Shown in pieces: positions 9,285 through 38,111 of a stretch of 64,000 bases of DNA (position 1 is the stretch's first letter; every line of letters starts with the position of its first letter). Where the stretch lies: the IMG/VR virus record IMGVR_UViG_3300042515_001753, positions 1 to 64,000 of that record; one strand, written 5' to 3'. Made by a program: the position numbers and the translations under genes. The notes beneath the pieces are model-generated. The model was not told the DNA's origin. It searched no databases and worked only from the letters and a program-made list of their open reading frames with translations.

Positions 9285-9905
9285 TTAGCATCTTTCTATA
9301 AATGAAATTACTTCTTGAACTGGTAAAGTATCTATAAAGTGTTCGGTCATTCCACGACCCATACTCATTTCATTTAGTGGTGCCTTATATGAAGAAAAAT
9401 GATTAAGAACTTTCCTTTCCAAGTTCCAAATATCTATGGACTTCCCAGACCATTCTCCAATCAGTTCTGCGGTTTCTTTTTTACGATATAACCAACCCTT
9501 ATAAGACCTACCGACTTTATACTTACCATTATGGAGTTTTATGAAATAGAGTTTGTCTGGATGCTCTGGGTCTTTACATACCCACCCGATTGATTGTGGA
9601 TATGGTTTTCCTTTTCTAGGACTAACTTTTCCAGTATTTGCTTTTTTGGTTGCTTCTATTGCTTTTTGAGAACAAGATTTTCCATAGTTTGGATTATTTT
9701 CTCCAGCATAACTTCTTCTTTTACTTATAACTCTTTCAGCAAAATCTGGTGCTTGTGCCGGATTTCCATAGTCATTACGAATACGAATTTTTACACCACA
9801 TTCCTTAAGAACTTTACTGACCTTATGATGAGAGATGTTAAGTTGTTTAGCAACATCTCTCATTTTCATACCAGAATTATATAAATCTATTATTTCATTT
9901 ACCAC
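9285..9905 (-). CDS. Putative free-standing homing endonuclease (HTH + NUMOD3 + GIY-YIG-like C-terminal domain)
   Basis: N-terminal HTH, GENNPNYGK, LYFIKL..YKVGRS..LERKVL..GMTEHF; late promoter 9929-9936. Confidence 0.65.
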   Translation of the reverse strand: MVNEIIDLYNSGMKMRDVAKQLNISHHKVSKVLKECGVKIRIRNDYGNPAQAPDFAERVISKRRSYAGENNPNYGKSCSQKAIEATKKANTGKVSPRKGKPYPQSIGWVCKDPEHPDKLYFIKLHNGKYKVGRSYKGWLYRKKETAELIGEWSGKSIDIWNLERKVLNHFSSYKAPLNEMSMGRGMTEHFIDTLPVQEVISFIERC

Positions 9906-9935
9906 AACTTCTATACCAAAGTTATAACTATTTAT

Positions 9936-9961
9936 AAAAAAAGGAACTTCGAAGAGTTCCC
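9936..9961 (-). terminator. Intrinsic terminator after psbA
   Basis: GGAACT-CTTCGA-AGTTCC followed by T-tract. Confidence 0.8.
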
Positions 9962-9988
9962 TTATTATACCATTATTTGGTTTTTATA

Positions 9989-11774
9989 TCAACCGATTGA
10001 CGGTGCCGTTAAAGCAACTTCTTGAGTAGAAGCGGCAGCAAGGTCAAGTGGAAAATTGTGAGCATTCCGTTCATGCCGTTTTTGTTATCGTAAGAACTCT
10101 TTATTTCTTACTTCTTACTGTCGCCAGTAAGACCAGACTATCTCTTCATCCGTTCTGGATGCTGGGCATTCGTGGGTAGATTATTGTTGGAACTCACTAC
10201 CTAGTCGTTAGACCTGCCGAAGAACCTATGTCCTCTTCGGATTGGTACGGGATTGTCTACTTGAGAGTTTCCCCGTTTAACCCAGTTTCGTCAAGGAATA
10301 TTCCTATTCCAGGGTGACTACATTTAGGAAATCACTTCCATACCAAGACCAGCACGATTAAGAATGTCAGCCCAAGTAGGAATTACTCGGTTTTGACTAT
10401 CAACGATGGACTGGTTAAAATTAAAACCGTTGCACTAGACCCATAAGTTTTCCATCCTTATGGAGTGGACTATATCTTCATCCCAGTAGGATGTCGGACG
10501 CTTAAACCTGTTATTAAGGAAACTATATTCCTCAGGTAGTCTCTGAACCTTTCTTGAGTGTACTCAAGACTTGGCTGCTGATTGCCCTTTTATTTGGAGG
10601 GTTTCCAGCAATTCATCCGATGTTTGCCGTTAAATTGCTTTAACGGAACCCCAATTGAGGTTAAAAGCCATCGTAGAAACCCCGAGAGCAGTGAACCAAA
10701 TTCCAACAACAGGCCATGTAGCAAGAAAGAAATGAAGCGACCTAGAGTTATTAAACGAAGCATATTGAAAAATAAGGCGTCCAAAATAACCATGAGCGGC
10801 AACGATATTGTATGTCTCTTCTTCTTGTCCGAACTTGTAACCATAATTCTGTGATTCAGTTTCTGTAGTTTCACGAACGAGTGACGAAGTAACCAAAGAA
10901 CCGTGCATCGCAGAGAACAGTGAACCACCGAACACACCAGCAACTCCAAGCATGTGGAATGGGTGCATAAGGATGTTATGTTCTGCCTGGAATACAAGCA
11001 TATAGTTAAAAGTACCAGAGATGCCTAGTGGCATAGCGTCAGAGAAAGAACCTTGACCGAAGGGATAGACCAAGAATACGGCACTCGCAGCAGCAACAGG
11101 TGCTGAGTAAGCGACGCAAATCCAAGGACGCATACCTAGACGGTAAGAAAGTTCCCATTCACGACCCATATAAGCATAGATGCCGATGAGGAAGTGAAAT
11201 ACAACGAGTTGGAATGGACCCCCATTATAGCAATCGGGGGACTATATGTTTCCATATAGATTGGACTATATCTTCACCTTATTTCTATTTAAGGTGTTGG
11301 GCGCTAATCTGGTATTACTCAACACGCTTGTTGACCCCAGTAGTCTCTGAACCTTCCACAGAAGTATCGTCTGTGGCTTGGCTGCTGATTGCCTTGTCGT
11401 ATAAACGATTTAGGGTTCCAGCAATTCACCCAATTTATAGTGACCCTATTTTACTTAAGCCACTCATCAAGACTTGCAGCTTCCCAGATTGGGTAGAAAT
11501 GCAGTCCGATAGCATTAGAAGAAGGAACAACGGCACCAGAGATGATGTTGTTACCATACATTAGAGAACCCGCTACTGGTTCACGAATGCCGTCAATGTC
11601 CACTGGGGGAGCACCAACGAAAGCGATAATGAAGCAAACCGTTGCCGCAAGAAGGCAAGGCACCATCAATACACCAAACCACCCGACATAAAGACGATTA
11701 TTGGTAGATGTAATCCAGTCACAGAAATCGTTCCAAGTATTTGTGGAACGTTGTTGAGCAATTGTAGCAGTCAT
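9989..11774 (-). CDS. psbA: Photosystem II D1 protein; exons 11458-11774, 10658-11230, 10331-10432, 9989-10076
   Basis: Exons total 1080 nt = 359 aa + stop; junctions restore EWL-YNGGP, FNL-NGFNF and [16 protein letters not shown] with H332/E333 at canonical numbering. Confidence 0.97.
10077..10330 (-). mobile_element. Group I intron 3 in psbA (254 nt, codon 331)
   Basis: P AAACGGGGAA, Q AATCCCGTA, R GTCTAACGACTA, S AAGAGATAGTCT; P1 GTGAT/GTCAC; terminal G. Confidence 0.93.
10433..10657 (-). mobile_element. Group I intron 2 in psbA (225 nt, codon 297)
   Basis: Same P/Q/R/S words as intron 1; P1 AACCT/GGGTT; terminal G. Confidence 0.95.
11231..11457 (-). mobile_element. Group I intron 1 in psbA (227 nt, codon 106)
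   Basis: Exon ends in U, intron ends in G; P AATTGCTGGAA, Q AATCAGCAG, R GTTCAGAGACTA, S AAGATATAGTCC; P1 AGTGGCT/GGTCACT. Confidence 0.95.
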
Positions 11775-11789
11775 TTAAATAAAAAGGGT

Positions 11790-11911
11790 AAGTATGAGTT
11801 CGGGGGAACGAACTGGTTACATTATGTTCCACGACACCCTCCATCGTGGATATGAGGGATTCTTTACTTCTCGTGATCCCGGTTGGAGAAGACACGGTTC
11901 TTAATCCGTGT
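11790..11911 (-). ncRNA. Structured psbA 5' leader (probably PhotoRC-II-like)
   Basis: Hairpins CACGG/CCGTG, CCACGAT/GTCGTGG (loop GAGGG complementary to upstream CCCTC), AGTTCG/CGAACT; family name from memory. Confidence 0.65.
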
Positions 11912-31132: not shown

Positions 31133-31215
31133 CGGAAAGAACAGGAATCGAACCTGCGAAGTTTTTACACCCAGCCGCTTTCAAGGCGGTGTCCTCGACC
31201 AACCGGACTCTTTCC
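31133..31215 (-). tRNA. tRNA-Ser(TGA)
   Basis: Cloverleaf with long variable arm; loop CTTGAAA. Confidence 0.9.
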
Positions 31216-35093: not shown

Positions 35094-35164
35094 AGCGGAT
35101 ACACGGATTTGAACCGAGGATAAAAGTTTGGAAAACTCTTGTGTTACCACTACACCATATCCGC
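35094..35164 (-). tRNA. tRNA-Gly(TCC)
   Basis: Cloverleaf; loop TTTCCAA. Confidence 0.92.
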
Positions 35165-35166
35165 AA

Positions 35167-35240
35167 TGTTGAGAGTGGAAGGTTTCGCATCCTTCTACTG
35201 TATCCCTTGTCGGGGTGCCTTACTTTTGGCATCACTCTCA
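35167..35240 (-). ncRNA. tRNA-sized cloverleaf RNA without a canonical anticodon arm
   Basis: TGAGAGTG/CACTCTCA, TGCC/GGCA, CCC/GGG, GAAGG/CCTTC. Confidence 0.6.
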
Positions 35241-35291
35241 GCGTACTTCCTTCACACCATGGAATTATAAGACATAATGAGTATTATGTCA

Positions 35292-35362
35292 AGCCCCATA
35301 ACAGAATTGAACTGTTCTCTGCAGTTTACAAAACTGCTGCATCACCACAATGCTTATAGGGC
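35292..35362 (-). tRNA. tRNA-Thr(TGT)
   Basis: Cloverleaf; loop TTTGTAA. Confidence 0.9.
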
Positions 35363-35670
35363 GGATTGTGTAATTCTCTATGGCAGTTAGCACAAACAAG
35401 AATACACTTTTTTGCTTCTTCTCTTTGTTTTTCAAGAGAAAGAGTAGACCCAATTATACCACCTTCCTTTACGGTTGGGTCAAGATGGTGGAAATCTAAT
35501 GCGGCAATGCACTTATTATACCCACATATAGAGCAACAGTTTCCTGCTTCCTCTTTTAGAATAGCAACATTTTTCCTTCTGGTAGCGGATACACGCTCTG
35601 CGCTTTTCTTTGCCCAATCAGGATTTTTTGCTTTTCTTTCAGCATAAGTTCGTGTTTCTATTTTTGCCAT
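35326..35670 (-). CDS. HNH endonuclease in the tRNA cluster
   Basis: CSICGY..ALDFHHLDP..KCILVCANCHRELH; late promoter 35692-35699. Confidence 0.88.
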   Translation of the reverse strand: MAKIETRTYAERKAKNPDWAKKSAERVSATRRKNVAILKEEAGNCCSICGYNKCIAALDFHHLDPTVKEGGIIGSTLSLEKQREEAKKCILVCANCHRELHNPPYKHCGDAAVL

Positions 35671-35706
35671 TATTATTGGTATAACTTTTATTATTTATAC
35701 CGATAA

Positions 35707-35779
35707 CTCCCCCACCTGGACTCGAACCAGGAACACTTTGATTAACAGTCAAATACTCTGCCAATTGAGCTATAGGGGA
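35707..35779 (-). tRNA. tRNA-Asn(GTT)
   Basis: Cloverleaf; loop CTGTTAA. Confidence 0.95.
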
Positions 35780-35783
35780 ATAT

Positions 35784-35898
35784 TGGTAGGAGGGGGAGAA
35801 CAAAGTGACTACCTCATCCCTCTTGCACATCATCTAGACTTTTGGACAGACCAGAGAGAGGTGTTGCACTTCCTACATTTTGATAGAGGCGCCTATCA
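35784..35898 (-). ncRNA. Structured RNA of unknown function ending in CCA
   Basis: GTAGGA/TCCTAC closing stem, ACCTC/GAGGT inner stem; own promoter 35904-35933. Confidence 0.55.
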
Positions 35899-35934
35899 GT
35901 TTATATAGTAACAAACTTTTGAAGGTTTGTCAAG

Positions 35935-36008
35935 CGTCCTTTGAGAGATTCGAACTCCCGACACATAGGTTCGTAGCCTACTGCTCTAATCCACTGAGCT
36001 AAAAGAAC
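35935..36008 (-). tRNA. tRNA-Arg(ACG)
   Basis: Cloverleaf; loop CTACGAA. Confidence 0.93.
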
Positions 36009-36012
36009 AAGG

Positions 36013-36084
36013 CGAAGGGTGAGGGATTTGAACCCCCATCGCAAGGTTTTGGAGACCTGCATCTTACCGTTAGACTAACCCAAC
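36013..36084 (-). tRNA. tRNA-Trp(CCA)
   Basis: Loop CTCCAAA; two U-U mismatches in the acceptor stem. Confidence 0.82.
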
Positions 36085-36106
36085 AAAATTTGGATATAAA
36101 ATCCAA

Positions 36107-36180
36107 TGCCCGATACAGGACTCGAACCTGTAAAACCTTGTTTCTAAGACAAGTATGTATTCCAATTCCATCAATCGGGC
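36107..36180 (-). tRNA. tRNA-Leu(TAG), short variable loop
   Basis: Loop CTTAGAA; 74 nt. Confidence 0.88.
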
Positions 36181-36254
36181 TGGCTGAGAAACTAGGACTC
36201 GAACCTAGATAAACGCCTTCAAAGGGCGGTGTCCTACCATTAGACGATTTCTCA
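36181..36254 (-). tRNA. tRNA-Gln(TTG)
   Basis: Loop CTTTGAA; encoded CCA. Confidence 0.93.
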
Positions 36255-36255
36255 T

Positions 36256-36330
36256 TGGGGTGTCGTGAGGGAATCGAACCCTCGTAGGGAGAATCACAAT
36301 CTCCAGTCTTAACCACTAGACTAACGACAC
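36256..36330 (-). tRNA. tRNA-His(GTG)
   Basis: Loop TTGTGAT; C73, encoded CCA. Confidence 0.92.
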
Positions 36331-36332
36331 AG

Positions 36333-36405
36333 TGGCTGTAGATGGATTCGAACCACCGACGACTTCCGTATGAAAGAAGCGTTCTACCAACTGAACTATA
36401 CAACC
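36333..36405 (-). tRNA. tRNA with CAT anticodon (elongator Met or Ile2)
   Basis: Loop TTCATAC; no initiator features. Confidence 0.88.
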
Positions 36406-36491
36406 TGGTGGAAGATGTTGGATTCGAACCAACGGAGGTTTTATCCTCACGGTTTAGCAAACCGATGCATTAACCGCTCTGCCAATCTTCC
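36406..36491 (-). tRNA. tRNA-Ser(GCT)
   Basis: Loop TTGCTAA; long variable arm; encoded CCA. Confidence 0.92.
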
Positions 36492-36494
36492 AAG

Positions 36495-36585
36495 TGGGGA
36501 GAAGGTGGAATCGAACCACCATTGCCAAAGGACGGAATCGAACCGTCTCTAACACCGTCGTGCTCACCATCCAAGGTGCTCTCCC
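36495..36585 (-). ncRNA. tRNA-like RNA with two T-arms and no anticodon arm
   Basis: GGGAGAG/TTCTCCC; GACGG-TTCGATT-CCGTC and GGTGG-TTCGATT-CCACC. Confidence 0.75.
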
Positions 36586-36588
36586 AAG

Positions 36589-36695
36589 TTGATAAGGGCG
36601 CCTGATTTAAAGTGCGCTTGGGTCGTTTAACTAGGGGACTATTTCACCCTCCTCCCCCGTCACACTAATGTTTGGTGGGGGTGGACCCTTATCAA
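36589..36695 (-). ncRNA. Structured RNA of unknown function (107 nt)
   Basis: Perfect 10-bp terminal stem TTGATAAGGG/CCCTTATCAA spanning the whole spacer. Confidence 0.6.
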
Positions 36696-36767
36696 TAGGA
36701 ATACCCAGATTTGAACTGGAATCTATCGGTTATCAACCGATTGCTCTAACCATTGAGCTATATTCCT
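36696..36767 (-). tRNA. tRNA-Ile(GAT)
   Basis: Loop TTGATAA. Confidence 0.93.
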
Positions 36768-36771
36768 GAGG

Positions 36772-36845
36772 CGGGAACAATTGGATTTGAACCAATAACA
36801 CCTTGTTCTTCAAACAAGTGCTCTACCAATTGGAGCTATGTTCCC
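36772..36845 (-). tRNA. tRNA-Phe(GAA)
   Basis: Loop TTGAAGA. Confidence 0.92.
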
Positions 36846-36849
36846 AAGG

Positions 36850-36923
36850 TCTGAGAGGCAGGATTTGAACCTGCGACTTGAGCGTTCCAAACACCCAGCT
36901 CTACCAAACTGAGCTACTCCCAG
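36850..36923 (-). tRNA. tRNA-Pro(TGG), second divergent copy
   Basis: Loop TTTGGAA; C1-G72, A73. Confidence 0.88.
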
Positions 36924-36926
36924 ATA

Positions 36927-36998
36927 CATTCCTAACGGGATTCGAACCCGTGTTACCTCCTTGAAAGGGAGGTGACCTAACCGCTAGTCGATAGGAAC
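36927..36998 (-). tRNA. tRNA-Glu(TTC)
   Basis: Loop CTTTCAA. Confidence 0.93.
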
Positions 36999-37003
36999 TT
37001 GAT

Positions 37004-37068
37004 TTGAAGGCAGGTGCGGTATCATCCCGAAGGCGTTCCCATGCTCCTTTTACTTTCCTTGCCTCCAA
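37004..37068 (-). ncRNA. Small structured spacer RNA (65 nt)
   Basis: TTGGAGGCA/TGCCTTCAA terminal stem. Confidence 0.45.
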
Positions 37069-37140
37069 CGACCCTAACGAGATTCGAACTCGTGATTCTT
37101 CTTAGACAGAGAAGTATGATAACCACTTCATCATAGGGTC
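37069..37140 (-). tRNA. tRNA-Asp(GTC)
   Basis: Loop CTGTCTA. Confidence 0.9.
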
Positions 37141-37144
37141 AAGG

Positions 37145-37233
37145 TGGGAGAAGAGGGAATTGCACCCCCAACGGTTCTTATGTAACAGTTTTACAGACTG
37201 CCGCCACACATATCTAATAGTAGCCTTTCTCCC
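37145..37233 (-). tRNA. Atypical tRNA-Tyr(GTA)
   Basis: Loop CTGTAAA; enlarged D-arm; T-loop TGCAATT. Confidence 0.8.
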
Positions 37234-37236
37234 AAA

Positions 37237-37309
37237 TGGGTCGTAGAGGAGTTGAACCTCTCTCTACCGGTTAAAAGCCGGGTGCATAAAACCGATCTGC
37301 CAACGACCC
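37237..37309 (-). tRNA. tRNA-Lys(TTT)
   Basis: Loop CTTTTAA. Confidence 0.9.
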
Positions 37310-37331
37310 AAATAATATGGATAAATATTCG

Positions 37332-37385
37332 GTTGTCTAGGTTCTGGTGGAGAGGCAATCCCTCAACCACTTGATTAGAATACCA
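37332..37385 (-). promoter_or_regulatory. tRNA-array leader: extended -10, boxB-like hairpin, boxA-like element
   Basis: TGGTATTCT, hairpin 37347-37370, AGAACCTAGACAAC 37332-37345. Confidence 0.6.
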
Positions 37386-37439
37386 CCGTTTGGTCTCTGG
37401 GGGGAGATTGGTGGGCACTTAGGAAACTGGTACAGGCAA

Positions 37440-37477
37440 CAAAAAAGGGGAGGAAACTTTTGGTTTCTCTCCCCCTT
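37440..37477 (-). terminator. Intrinsic terminator
   Basis: GGGGAG-AGAAAC..GTTTC-CTCCCC + T6. Confidence 0.8.
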
Positions 37478-37503
37478 CTTATTTGCTTTTTATGGATTAC
37501 ATC

Positions 37504-37605
37504 TTACATATGTCTTTCCATATCCGCAAACAGGGGAGAACCCTCAATATGCCAATAGCGGCAATCGAGATTACTAATCTGTTTTGTGGGCATCGGATAA
37601 GACAT
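37504..37605 (-). CDS. 33-aa peptide
   Basis: MSYPMPTKQISNLDCRYWHIEGSPLFADMERHM between TATAAATA (37627-37634) and a terminator. Confidence 0.45.
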   Translation of the reverse strand: MSYPMPTKQISNLDCRYWHIEGSPLFADMERHM

Positions 37606-37658
37606 TGTTTTCGACCTAAGTGTTTTTATTTATAAGACTTTTTTGTTAAAAAGTCAAG

Positions 37659-37732
37659 TGGAGAATATCGGACTCGAACCGATGACATCTTGCTTGCAAA
37701 GCAAGTGCTACTACCAACTGAGCTAATTCCCC
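37659..37732 (-). tRNA. tRNA-Ala(TGC)
   Basis: Loop TTTGCAA; G3-U70. Confidence 0.95.
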
Positions 37733-37735
37733 AAG

Positions 37736-37809
37736 CGTCCCGAGCTGGATTCGAACCAGCGACCCACATCTTAGAAGGATGTTGCACTAATCCGCTGTGC
37801 TATCGGGAC
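37736..37809 (-). tRNA. tRNA-Arg(TCT)
   Basis: Loop CTTCTAA. Confidence 0.95.
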
Positions 37810-37922
37810 ATAAGGAACCTCCCTGTTTGTGCTTCTATGAGAGGCATGGGAGGTGTGGGATTTATAAGAAGTTTGGACCTCCTCCACCCGTGAACCTACT
37901 ATAAGGCATCAGGGTACTAAAG

Positions 37923-38111
37923 TCAACCCTTTGCTTCCTTACGGGCGTTCTTCTCTTCGGTAATCTCGCCTCTACGGGTCTTGACGAGTTTGGCAACTTC
38001 CTGAAGTGCCTTACGGGCACGAGTACCGGCGGCACTATTACCAGCAGTGAACTTTTCGTCTTCTACTTTCCACGCTTCAATAGCAGTCAGTAGTTCTTGT
38101 GATACAGACAT
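37923..38111 (-). CDS. Small basic protein, histone H1-like Hc1 N-terminal-like
   Basis: EKFTAGNSAAGTRARKALQE; GGAG RBS before the ATG at 38111. Confidence 0.7.
   Translation of the reverse strand: MSVSQELLTAIEAWKVEDEKFTAGNSAAGTRARKALQEVAKLVKTRRGEITEEKNARKEAKG

Follow-up and report, generated by a model that had tools for sequence, protein, structure and literature searches.

Conserved structured RNAs, one of them an abiF-type antitoxin-like RNA, in the tRNA operon of a cyanophage

The abiF RNA (Rfam RF03085; examples are RCd22 of Clostridioides difficile and the PbAbiF ncRNA) is the type III antitoxin of the AbiF/Abi_2 HEPN RNase. It neutralizes AbiF in trans (bioRxiv 10.1101/2025.04.15.648962; PMC12737573) and also acts in cis on transcription in bacteria (bioRxiv 10.1101/2025.04.15.648962). 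An abiF hit has previously been published for the cyanophage S-CREM1, but only as a conserved sRNA, before the antitoxin role of the family was known (PMC9964418). Phages can carry type III antitoxins without the toxin: the lytic myovirus PhiTE of Pectobacterium has an orphan copy of a type III RNA antitoxin, pseudo-ToxI, that could neutralize the host toxin and block abortive infection. In PhiTE, the mimic had to be expanded or acquired in escape mutants, and its function was shown experimentally (PMC3475682). The RNA products of phage tRNA loci have also been proposed or shown to defeat host nucleases; these are functional decoding tRNAs that replace cleaved host tRNAs (PMC10264068), including T5 tRNA-Lys against PARIS (reviewed in PMC13728456). 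Lastly, the tRNA cluster of phage T4 encodes species 1 and 2 (rnaC and rnaD), small stable RNAs of unknown function that are matured from the same precursors as the tRNAs.

We investigated a 64,000-nucleotide stretch of IMG/VR record IMGVR_UViG_3300042515_001753 (positions 1 to 64,000; here, "the window"), which derives from a freshwater T4-like cyanophage (Kyanoviridae, a relative of S-SRM01). An earlier note, made from the sequence alone, had proposed that a tRNA array in the window carries a set of unknown stable RNAs in its long spacers. As the note had suggested as a check, we scanned the window with ARAGORN and Rfam, and we identified 18 tRNAs on the minus strand between 35094 and 37809. 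Ten spacers are 0 to 22 nt long, whereas the long ones are 69, 94, 127, 153, 204, 343, and 347 nt, in addition to an 85-nt leader. The long spacers are filled by discrete folds, and three of the elements (A, F, and G) lie directly behind conserved sigma-70-like promoters (Table 1). The observation in the note was therefore confirmed. Three long spacers had been left out of the note; these hold a divergent tRNA-Tyr, an HNH open reading frame (ORF), and a region with a 33-amino-acid ORF, a terminator, and two conserved hairpins.

Table 1. Features of the tRNA array and its leader, with supporting evidence
Position	Strand	Feature	Evidence
37898..37926	-	Promoter P_A (TTGACT-17-TATAGT); the -35 hexamer overlaps the stop codon of the Hc1 histone-like gene	Conserved in 33 of 80 related loci at 92-100% identity
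37817..37889	-	Element A, two-hairpin leader RNA (spacer fold examined, 37811-37895)	See text
37857..37889	-	5' hairpin domain of A; P1, 3 bp (37889-37887 with 37859-37857); P2, 5 bp (37884-37880 with 37870-37866); loop GGUCCAAAC	Compensatory changes at 2 of 3 pairs of P1 and 4 of 5 pairs of P2
37817..37853	-	abiF RNA motif (RF03085); 6-bp outer stem, bulged A, 3-bp inner stem, loop CUCUCAUAGAA, 3' internal loop CAAACA	44.8 bits (gathering score, 37); E 5.5e-5 for the whole window; compensatory changes at 3 of 6 outer-stem and 2 of 3 inner-stem pairs (inner pair varies as U-A, A-U, and C-G)
37735..37809	-	tRNA-Arg(UCU), 7 nt downstream of the abiF motif; its 5' end is the inferred RNase P site that would release leader A	In 64 of 75 distinct related leaders a tRNA starts 4-10 nt after the motif; 51 of these are Arg(tct)
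37643..37655		boxA-like match in the array	3 mismatches; see text
37311..37657		Spacer with a 33-amino-acid ORF, a terminator, and two conserved hairpins	
37347..37475	-	Intrinsic terminator (37440-37475) followed by hairpins 37383-37414 (CCACC...GGUGG) and 37347-37370 (related to the recurrent GGUGG-UUGAGAGA-CCACC motif), ahead of tRNA-Lys	18 distinct variants in 39 loci; covariation not counted
37146..37233	-	Divergent tRNA-Tyr(GUA) (spacer 37142-37235), with an odd D arm and an unpaired long variable region	Missed by the default ARAGORN run; Tyr(gta) at a relaxed threshold; 26.9 bits with the tRNA-Sec model; relatives have tRNA-Tyr in the same Lys-Tyr-Asp position
37004..37067	-	Element C; fold closed by a roughly 10-bp stem, conserved core GGAAAGUAAAAGGAGCAUGGGAAC...GAUACCGCACCUGCC, variable-length inner hairpin	Four distinct variants; absent from RNA-library contigs of related phages (joint 36998-37068); no Rfam match
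36589..36695	-	Element D; 107-nt four-way junction closed by the 10-bp stem UUGAUAAGGG/CCCUUAUCAA; behaves as a cassette inserted after tRNA-Ile	A different phage (L207) has a 98% identical copy between a diverged tRNA-Ile and tRNA-Ser, both changes at unpaired positions; no match in cultured phages
36495..36585	-	Element E; tRNA-like RNA with acceptor, D, and T arms; a GACG-tetraloop hairpin plus a second T-arm-like hairpin replace the anticodon and variable arms	All 26 pairs kept in 4 variants, 3 compensatory
35905..35933	-	Promoter P_F (TTGACA-17-TACTAT with an extended -10 TG)	Conserved in relatives
35882..35897	-	Short hairpin GAUAGGCGCCUCUAUC ahead of F	Expanded to a roughly 55-nt hairpin in most relatives
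35785..35876	-	Element F; member of a conserved RNA family closed by GUAGGA/UCCUAC; the window copy keeps the conserved 5' half but has a replaced 3' half; tRNA-Asn starts 4 nt after it	19 distinct variants; helix 19-21/57-59 of the alignment covaries as CAC/GUG, UCC/GGA, ACC/GGU, and CCC/GGG; no Rfam match
35363..35705		HNH ORF	
35264..35292	-	Promoter P_G (TTGACA-17-TATAAT, 12 of 12); overlaps the 3' end of tRNA-Thr	Promoter and its 23-nt leader conserved in 53 loci
35167..35240	-	Element G; 74-nt cloverleaf tRNA-like RNA; mini-hairpin CCC-GACAA-GGG in place of the anticodon arm; tRNA-Gly follows	Family shares ACACCCCGACAAGGGA; family cloverleaf has 98% of cells paired, 8 of 20 pairs compensatory

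We next determined whether the folds are better than expected by chance. Of the six folds listed in the note, those of G, D, E, C, and F are each closed by a terminal stem, as the note had stated, but A is not; it consists of two adjacent hairpin domains. Folding energy was better than that of shuffled sequences for G (z, -5.4; 0 of 200 shuffles) and D (z, -3.1; 0 of 200 shuffles), was borderline for E (z, -2.0), and was no better than that of shuffles for A, C, and F (z, -1.2, -0.75, and -0.4, respectively). Lack of conservation and of covariation had been named in advance as grounds for rejecting the observation. We compared the elements with their relatives, and this supported A, F, G, and E by covariation (Table 1).

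The 3' half of element A is a bona fide abiF RNA. It is a full-length match to model positions 1 to 37, scores above the curated gathering score, and has all the conserved loop nucleotides; relatives score 47 to 56 bits. In an alignment of 26 distinct phage copies, 98.2% of cells were paired and 11 of 17 pairs had compensatory changes, whereas slid controls gave 2 to 6 and 0 of 500 shuffles reached the observed values. The loops CCUCUCA and CAAA are invariant in the abiF-type copies. The conserved 5' domain has no counterpart in the Rfam family, and we have no explanation for its role. The element is present in 53 of 80 loci retrieved through the neighboring Hc1 gene, in more than 120 viral contigs (a lower bound), and in the cultured phages S-SRM01 (49.3 bits) and S-CREM1, where it lies 4 nt before tRNA-Gly inside a tRNA cluster. 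It is also kept in phages that have no tRNA downstream of it (loci L010, L013, L068, and L089), indicating that it is more than a tRNA leader.

The association that named the abiF family is a position immediately upstream of an abiF/Abi_2 gene. We verified this arrangement in PCC 7002 and in locus L199, a Bacteroidales genome in which the motif plus a U-tract precedes an Abi_2 gene (Pfam, 2.6e-55). In contrast, the phage element is followed by tRNA-Arg, with no U-tract terminator. We found no AbiF homologue in the window or in 2.16 Mb of related sequence (205 loci). Among 50,697 phage records, 67 carry AbiF; all are temperate phages of Firmicutes and none is a cyanophage, in a set that includes the complete S-SRM01 and S-CREM1 genomes, which do carry the RNA. 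The window covers 64 kb of a genome of about 234 kb, so an AbiF gene elsewhere in this phage is not excluded. We conclude that the antitoxin RNA is carried without the toxin at the loci examined.

To determine whether a possible target exists, we searched for AbiF in cyanobacteria. AbiF genes occur on at least 7 cyanobacterial plasmids, including those of Picosynechococcus, Synechocystis, and Cyanobacterium aponinum. Two abiF-like motifs lie upstream of the PCC 7002 gene, the one examined, although they score below the Rfam gathering threshold (27 and 25 bits). However, a genome scan with the phage-type stems found no cyanobacterial genome, the actual host of this phage is unknown, and no AbiF has been shown in freshwater picocyanobacteria, such that these observations do not settle whether the host lineage carries the cognate toxin. 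Evidence for expression is limited to the conserved promoter and to presence in metatranscriptome contigs, which carry no ends or strand and for which DNA carry-over is possible; RNA stability, processing, and CCA addition were not measured.

Elements E and G have acceptor, D, and T arms forming a cloverleaf, but neither has the 5-bp anticodon stem and 7-nt loop of a canonical tRNA. In G, the GACAA pentaloop is on a 3-bp stem (5 bp in relatives). In E, the compensatory changes contradict the tRNA-Leu anticodon stem that ARAGORN draws for the copy in locus L037. The window copies were not called by ARAGORN or by the Rfam tRNA model, although relatives of G reach 32 to 39 bits with the latter. 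The divergent tRNA-Tyr, in contrast, has an anticodon loop, a T arm, an acceptor stem, and a conserved position in the array; its D arm is aberrant, so its function is uncertain. F is a new conserved RNA family, found in about 45 contigs, and C and D are cassette-like folds with few relatives. The note had also proposed a boxA leader. The window has 38 matches to the boxA consensus with up to 3 mismatches, compared to 37.2 expected, and the match in the array lies in a palindromic promoter region whose sequence differs in relatives. Hence, the boxA claim is at chance level.

The phage element thus shares with bacterial abiF RNAs the 37-nt motif (6-bp outer stem, bulged A, 3-bp inner stem, CUCUCA..GA loop, and CAAA internal loop), but it is fused to a phage-specific 5' hairpin domain and to a tRNA, and it is carried by lytic cyanomyoviruses rather than by a defense island or prophage. 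It parallels pseudo-ToxI as an orphan type III antitoxin copy in a lytic myovirus, but it belongs to a different toxin family (HEPN AbiF rather than ToxN), is a single motif rather than tandem repeats, and is a fixed, widely conserved part of wild phages; its function is untested. The S-CREM1 study did not note the missing toxin gene, the tRNA linkage, or the wide spread among cyanophages, and S-CREM1 lacks the 5' hairpin domain arrangement seen here. The T4 species 1 and 2 RNAs, the analogy drawn in the note, likewise lie in the tRNA cluster of a T4-type phage; maturation was not examined and no sequence comparison with T4 was run, which leaves the kinship undecided. The cyanophage set is larger, modular, and includes a member with an identifiable family. 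With respect to phage tRNAs that counter tRNA-cleaving systems, the candidates here are a non-tRNA antitoxin mimic and tRNA-like RNAs that cannot decode.

We considered whether element A could instead be a purely cis-acting leader of the operon (a 5' stabilizer, a processing platform, or a transcription-control element) whose abiF fold has been reused, or is ancestral, without any link to AbiF. The element always sits at the 5' end of a transcription unit directly behind a promoter, and relatives carry other structured leaders of unrelated sequence at the same position, as would be expected for a generic leader function; the cis activity of bacterial abiF RNA is also consistent with this. However, every loop nucleotide that defines the AbiF-binding family is invariant across copies whose stems have changed, no U-tract terminator follows the phage copies, and the same motif occurs inside tRNA clusters away from any promoter (S-CREM1 and a second copy in locus L019) and in unrelated phage contexts. 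We consider this reading unlikely. Less likely still is that the RNA is the antitoxin of a phage-encoded AbiF-like toxin located elsewhere in the genome, serving superinfection exclusion or addiction, as in the C. difficile prophage system. AbiF systems are often phage or prophage borne, and only about a quarter of this genome was visible, but the distribution of AbiF among phages described above and the canonical adjacency of RNA and gene argue against it.

For E and G, the suggestion in the note that they are tRNA-mimic decoys, soaking up host toxins that act on tRNAs, is possible but doubtful, as is a role as bare RNase P/Z handles that punctuate the precursor. Both keep the tRNA arms under covariation, and in other cyanophage contigs G-type elements follow the abiF motif directly, where a true tRNA stands in this phage. 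Phage tRNAs are known countermeasures to tRNA-cleaving defenses (PMC10264068). However, no target has been identified, a decoy for anticodon nucleases should keep an anticodon loop, the window copy of G has lost the canonical T loop, and few variants are available (5 distinct sequences of G and 4 of E). It is also unlikely that C, D, E, and G are decaying tRNA genes or recombination and homing-endonuclease debris. The array is highly rearranged between relatives, an HNH gene sits inside it, contigs of related phages lack C or G, and C and D have few relatives. In contrast, compensatory changes maintain the non-tRNA hairpins of E and G, D is nearly identical between phages whose flanking tRNA-Ile genes have diverged, and F is conserved.

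The interpretation in the note was partly supported. The spacers hold genuine structured RNAs positioned such that tRNA processing could free them, two are tRNA mimics without an anticodon loop, and an anti-defense role is the best reading for the first element. However, the set is heterogeneous rather than one system, A is not unknown, and its likely target is a type III toxin-antitoxin nuclease; no tRNA-targeting defense is shown. The explanation that we favor, with only moderate confidence, is that the early tRNA operon of this phage doubles as a carrier of structured RNA cassettes. In this view, host RNA polymerase would make the leader-tRNA precursor early in infection, starting about 2 nt before the first stem of A, and RNase P would cut at the tRNA 5' end and free an RNA of about 80 nt. 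Our data establish membership of the abiF family by covariance model, covariation, promoter conservation, tight linkage to a tRNA, absence of AbiF in the window and in the related loci, and the presence of AbiF in cyanobacterial plasmids, with abiF-like RNAs upstream in the one examined. Early expression, RNase P release, AbiF binding, and the benefit to the phage are inferences; neither AbiF binding and neutralization nor rescue from abortive infection was assayed. The other cassettes are all placed such that tRNA-end processing would excise them; F, C, and D have no identified partner, and we leave undecided whether these cassettes serve as decoys, processing handles, or regulators. If the proposed mechanism is correct, the released RNA would replace the labile antitoxin RNA of the host when host transcription collapses, AbiF would stay inhibited, and abortive infection would fail; the phage would thus use its tRNA operon to make and release an orphan antitoxin decoy that disarms a host defense.

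To place the tRNA array in context, we searched the window with Rfam and examined the neighboring genes. Rfam identified PhotoRC-II, wcaG and group I introns, and the genes next to the array encode an Hc1 histone-like protein, an OprB/SLH porin, PstS and Dps. The nearest cultured relatives are the Synechococcus phages S-SRM01, S-CREM1 and S-PM2. Contigs identical to the window come from IMG/VR, the longest being 233,886 bp. This is a T4-like cyanomyovirus, and all the features discussed here lie on the minus strand. Outside the array, three separate Rfam group I intron matches (57.8 to 108 bits) lie within about 1.4 kb. An ORF fragment among them looks like D1/PsbA, and a PhotoRC-II RNA lies upstream; several introns in one cyanophage psbA gene would be unusual. 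A weak tRNA match (30.8 bits) lies next to tRNA-Pro, at the position where relatives carry tRNA-Ser(UGA), and is probably a diverged or decaying tRNA-Ser.

Locations of the features described in this part (L numbers are our identifiers for the loci compared)
Feature	Location	Strand
Three Rfam group I intron matches	window 10114-11479	-
ORF fragment resembling D1/PsbA	window 10630-11169	
PhotoRC-II RNA	window 11814-11904	-
Weak tRNA match next to tRNA-Pro	window 31133-31215	-
tRNA array (18 tRNAs)	window 35094-37809	-
HNH endonuclease ORF	window 35326-35670	-
tRNA called Leu(UAG)	window 36107-36180	-
Two conserved hairpins ahead of tRNA-Lys	window 37347-37414	-
Intrinsic terminator	window 37440-37475	
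33-aa ORF	window 37504-37605	-
Promoter-like site of the 33-aa ORF	window 37628-37657	
abiF RNA (RF03085) in element A	window 37853-37817	-
abiF-like motifs, Picosynechococcus PCC 7002 plasmid pAQ3	L205 968-1007 and 1142-1178	
tRNA cluster with wcaG and manA RNAs, S-CREM1	L211 (S-CREM1 9745-10643)	

An earlier note proposed that every long noncoding spacer of the array is filled by a fold closed by a terminal stem, with three of the folds directly behind their own promoters, and suggested ARAGORN and Rfam scans as a check. We ran both, and they agreed on 18 tRNAs. Read in the direction of transcription, ten spacers are 0 to 22 nt, whereas the long ones are 347, 94, 69, 204, 153, 343 and 127 nt, and an 85-nt leader precedes the first tRNA. 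Of the six folds listed in the note, five (elements C, D, E, F and G) are closed by a terminal stem; the sixth, the leader RNA (element A), consists of two adjacent hairpin domains. Folding energy alone is convincing only for G (z −5.4) and D (z −3.1). Three strong sigma-70-type promoters stand directly ahead of A, F and G and are conserved in relatives. We concluded that the observation is real.

Three long spacers were omitted from the note's list. One is a divergent tRNA-Tyr. One is an HNH endonuclease ORF whose 3′ end overlaps the 5′ half of tRNA-Thr, and which is nearly absent from the RNA-library contigs that cover its neighbors. The third holds a 33-aa ORF with its own promoter-like site, a strong intrinsic terminator and two conserved hairpins. 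The 33-aa ORF is conserved at 85 to 97% DNA identity in about 27 related loci and has no Pfam match. The hairpin GGUGG-UUGAGAGA-CCACC, seen here and in loci L043, L032 and L121, recurs ahead of tRNA-Lys and as the first element of one type of alternative leader (class 2); it looks like a reused protein-binding or processing motif. Within the array, the tRNA called Leu(UAG) is only 74 nt long and has no long variable arm. Relatives also carry 74-nt Leu tRNAs, which is atypical for bacterial-type tRNA-Leu.

We next examined element A. Rfam places an abiF RNA (RF03085) in this element, scoring 44.8 bits against a gathering score of 37; every conserved loop nucleotide matches, and the stem is changed in a compensated way. 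Using the neighboring Hc1 gene as an anchor, we fetched 80 related loci, 53 of which carry the element at the same place behind the same promoter. A lack of conservation and of covariation among the spacers had been named in advance as grounds for rejecting the proposal. We aligned 26 distinct copies of element A. The alignment supports four helices: a 3-bp and a 5-bp helix forming a 5′ domain with the invariant loop GGUCCAAAC, and the two helices of the abiF motif. In this alignment, 98.2% of cells are paired and 11 of 17 pairs show compensatory change, whereas slid controls give 2 to 6 and no shuffle reaches the observed values.

A pattern scan of viral contigs identified the motif in at least 120 contigs, which fall into two contexts. 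Class I is the arrangement seen here. In class II, the motif is flanked by AACAC and UCAC, and in the low-GC (cyanophage-like) class II contigs it is often followed by a tRNA or a tRNA-like element. Among class I copies, 64 of 75 distinct downstream contexts have a tRNA starting 4 to 10 nt after the motif, and 51 of these are tRNA-Arg(UCU). The cultured phage S-SRM01 has the same layout, unannotated in its GenBank record. In S-CREM1, the published abiF hit (PMC9964418) lies 4 nt before tRNA-Gly inside a tRNA cluster that also interleaves wcaG and manA RNAs. These two RNAs are usually treated as cis-regulatory, and their placement among tRNA genes, like that of the abiF RNA, suggests that they too may be released as free RNAs. 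Four related loci keep the element although no tRNA follows it. It is therefore not merely a tRNA leader.

The abiF RNA is the antitoxin of the AbiF/Abi_2 HEPN RNase; it binds the toxin directly and works in trans, and its stem structure matters but its stem sequence does not (bioRxiv 10.1101/2025.04.15.648962; PMC12737573). We verified the canonical arrangement, consisting of the motif, a U-tract and then an Abi_2 gene, in a Bacteroidales genome. In contrast, no AbiF homologue exists in the window or in 2.16 Mb of related viral loci, and a tblastn search of 50,697 phage records found AbiF only in temperate Firmicutes phages. Cyanobacteria do carry the toxin: it is encoded on plasmids of Picosynechococcus PCC 7002, 8807 and 73109, NIES-970, Synechocystis PCC 6714 and Cyanobacterium aponinum. 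Two abiF-like motifs, both below the Rfam threshold and one of them 23 nt upstream, precede the annotated Abi family protein gene of PCC 7002, next to a type I restriction gene. This two-motif layout resembles RCd22 of Clostridioides difficile. However, a scan of genome contigs with the phage-type stems gave 7 hits, none of them in a cyanobacterium and four of them phage pieces in MAGs.

We propose that an early host-polymerase promoter drives a leader-tRNA precursor and that RNase P cleavage at the tRNA 5′ end releases an RNA of about 80 nt. This RNA would act as an orphan antitoxin and keep host AbiF inhibited when host transcription is shut off. Expression timing, processing and binding are all inferred. 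Metatranscriptome data show that the region, spacers included, is present in RNA libraries, but these data are contigs from which no RNA ends, strand or processing sites could be read. The closest precedent is pseudo-ToxI of phage PhiTE (PMC3475682).

We then compared the remaining elements with their relatives. Element E, a tRNA-like RNA, is conserved in four variants, and all 26 predicted pairs are kept; a compensated GACG hairpin and a second T-arm-like hairpin replace the anticodon and variable arms. ARAGORN calls the copy in one relative (locus L037) tRNA-Leu(cag), and the window has UAG at the same place. However, the U-to-C change is compensated by an A-to-G change across the GACG hairpin, which excludes that anticodon stem and rules out the tRNA-Leu call. 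Element G belongs to a family that shares ACACCCCGACAAGGGA and folds as a cloverleaf with a GACAA pentaloop instead of an anticodon loop; 8 of 20 pairs are compensatory. In other cyanophage contigs, the same kind of element directly follows the abiF motif. Element F belongs to a family of at least 19 distinct sequences, each ending a few bases before a tRNA. One helix covaries strongly, and the window copy has a replaced 3′ half. Element C has four variants with a variable inner hairpin, and element D is found nearly unchanged in a second phage whose flanking tRNA has diverged. None of these elements matches Rfam, and neither do the class 2 and class 3 leaders or the hairpins ahead of tRNA-Lys. 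A blastn search of cultured phages found nothing for D or F; only the hairpin ahead of F matches S-SRM01 and S-CREM1. We also considered whether F is an expanded abiF motif, since it shares a CAC/GUG inner stem, a CUCUCG...GAU loop and an AAA 3′ loop. The Rfam model gives no hit even at an E value of 10 on a 121-nt stretch, so this stays an unsupported lead.

The promoter-proximal slot that A occupies here holds other, unrelated structured leaders in relatives (L017-type relatives, for example L021, L044, L037, L019a and L043). One variant keeps the 5′ domain and outer stem but swaps the core to CCCACUGGGUCGAUAAAGAU. A second type starts with the same GGUGG-UUGAGAGA-CCACC hairpin, and a third starts with GGGGGUUGAGAGAUCAACUGCGACAUUCCCC. 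None matches Rfam. A two-hairpin module (AAGUCCUGC..GCAGG, then CCAGGRGRGUUGAUCRCCYCCUG) precedes the abiF motif in many non-myovirus cyanophage contigs (L081, L091, L110, L168, L187 and L194), and in some myovirus relatives (L044, L054 and L020) it follows the class 2 leader. RNA-library contigs of related phages lack G or C. These RNAs therefore behave as interchangeable cassettes.

The note interpreted the spacer RNAs as tRNA-mimic decoys or regulators and, together with a boxA leader, as a candidate undescribed system. This interpretation is partly supported: it is right in spirit for several elements, but the set is heterogeneous, and its head element belongs to a known family whose presence in a cyanophage was already reported. 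The boxA part of the claim is at chance level, since the frequency of boxA matches equals that expected by chance and the array copy is a 3-mismatch hit inside a palindromic promoter. What is new is the orphan status of the abiF motif, its tight coupling to tRNA genes, its wide conservation, its 5′ domain and the anti-AbiF reading, together with the anticodon-less tRNA-like families and the F family.

A broader reading, which we regard as possible but unlikely, is that cyanophage tRNA operons are modular RNA anti-defense islands in which swappable cassettes are all excised by the host's own tRNA-processing enzymes. The cassettes would include the orphan AbiF-antitoxin RNA, at least three alternative leader types at the same promoter-proximal slot, the anticodon-less tRNA-like RNAs E and G, and the F, C and D families, and each would neutralize a different host RNA-binding or RNA-cutting defense protein. 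The abiF-type member would then be a natural RNA inhibitor of the nuclease family from which Cas13 is thought to descend.

The E, G and F families are new conserved RNAs absent from Rfam. Element A may offer a compact natural RNA ligand for AbiF-family HEPN nucleases, and it is directly testable with cultured systems: S-SRM01, which infects Synechococcus KCZYC6, S-CREM1, which infects CB0101, and the AbiF of PCC 7002, WP_012308467.1. If the decoy reading is right, RNA-based antitoxin mimicry is not a laboratory escape curiosity but would be a fixed, widespread trait of ecologically dominant cyanophages, and AbiF-type abortive infection would be a real selective force in picocyanobacteria. The reading also gives phage tRNA arrays a concrete extra function: they would act as expression-and-processing scaffolds for small RNAs, which bears on the old question of why phages carry tRNA clusters and what the T4 species 1 and 2 RNAs are for.
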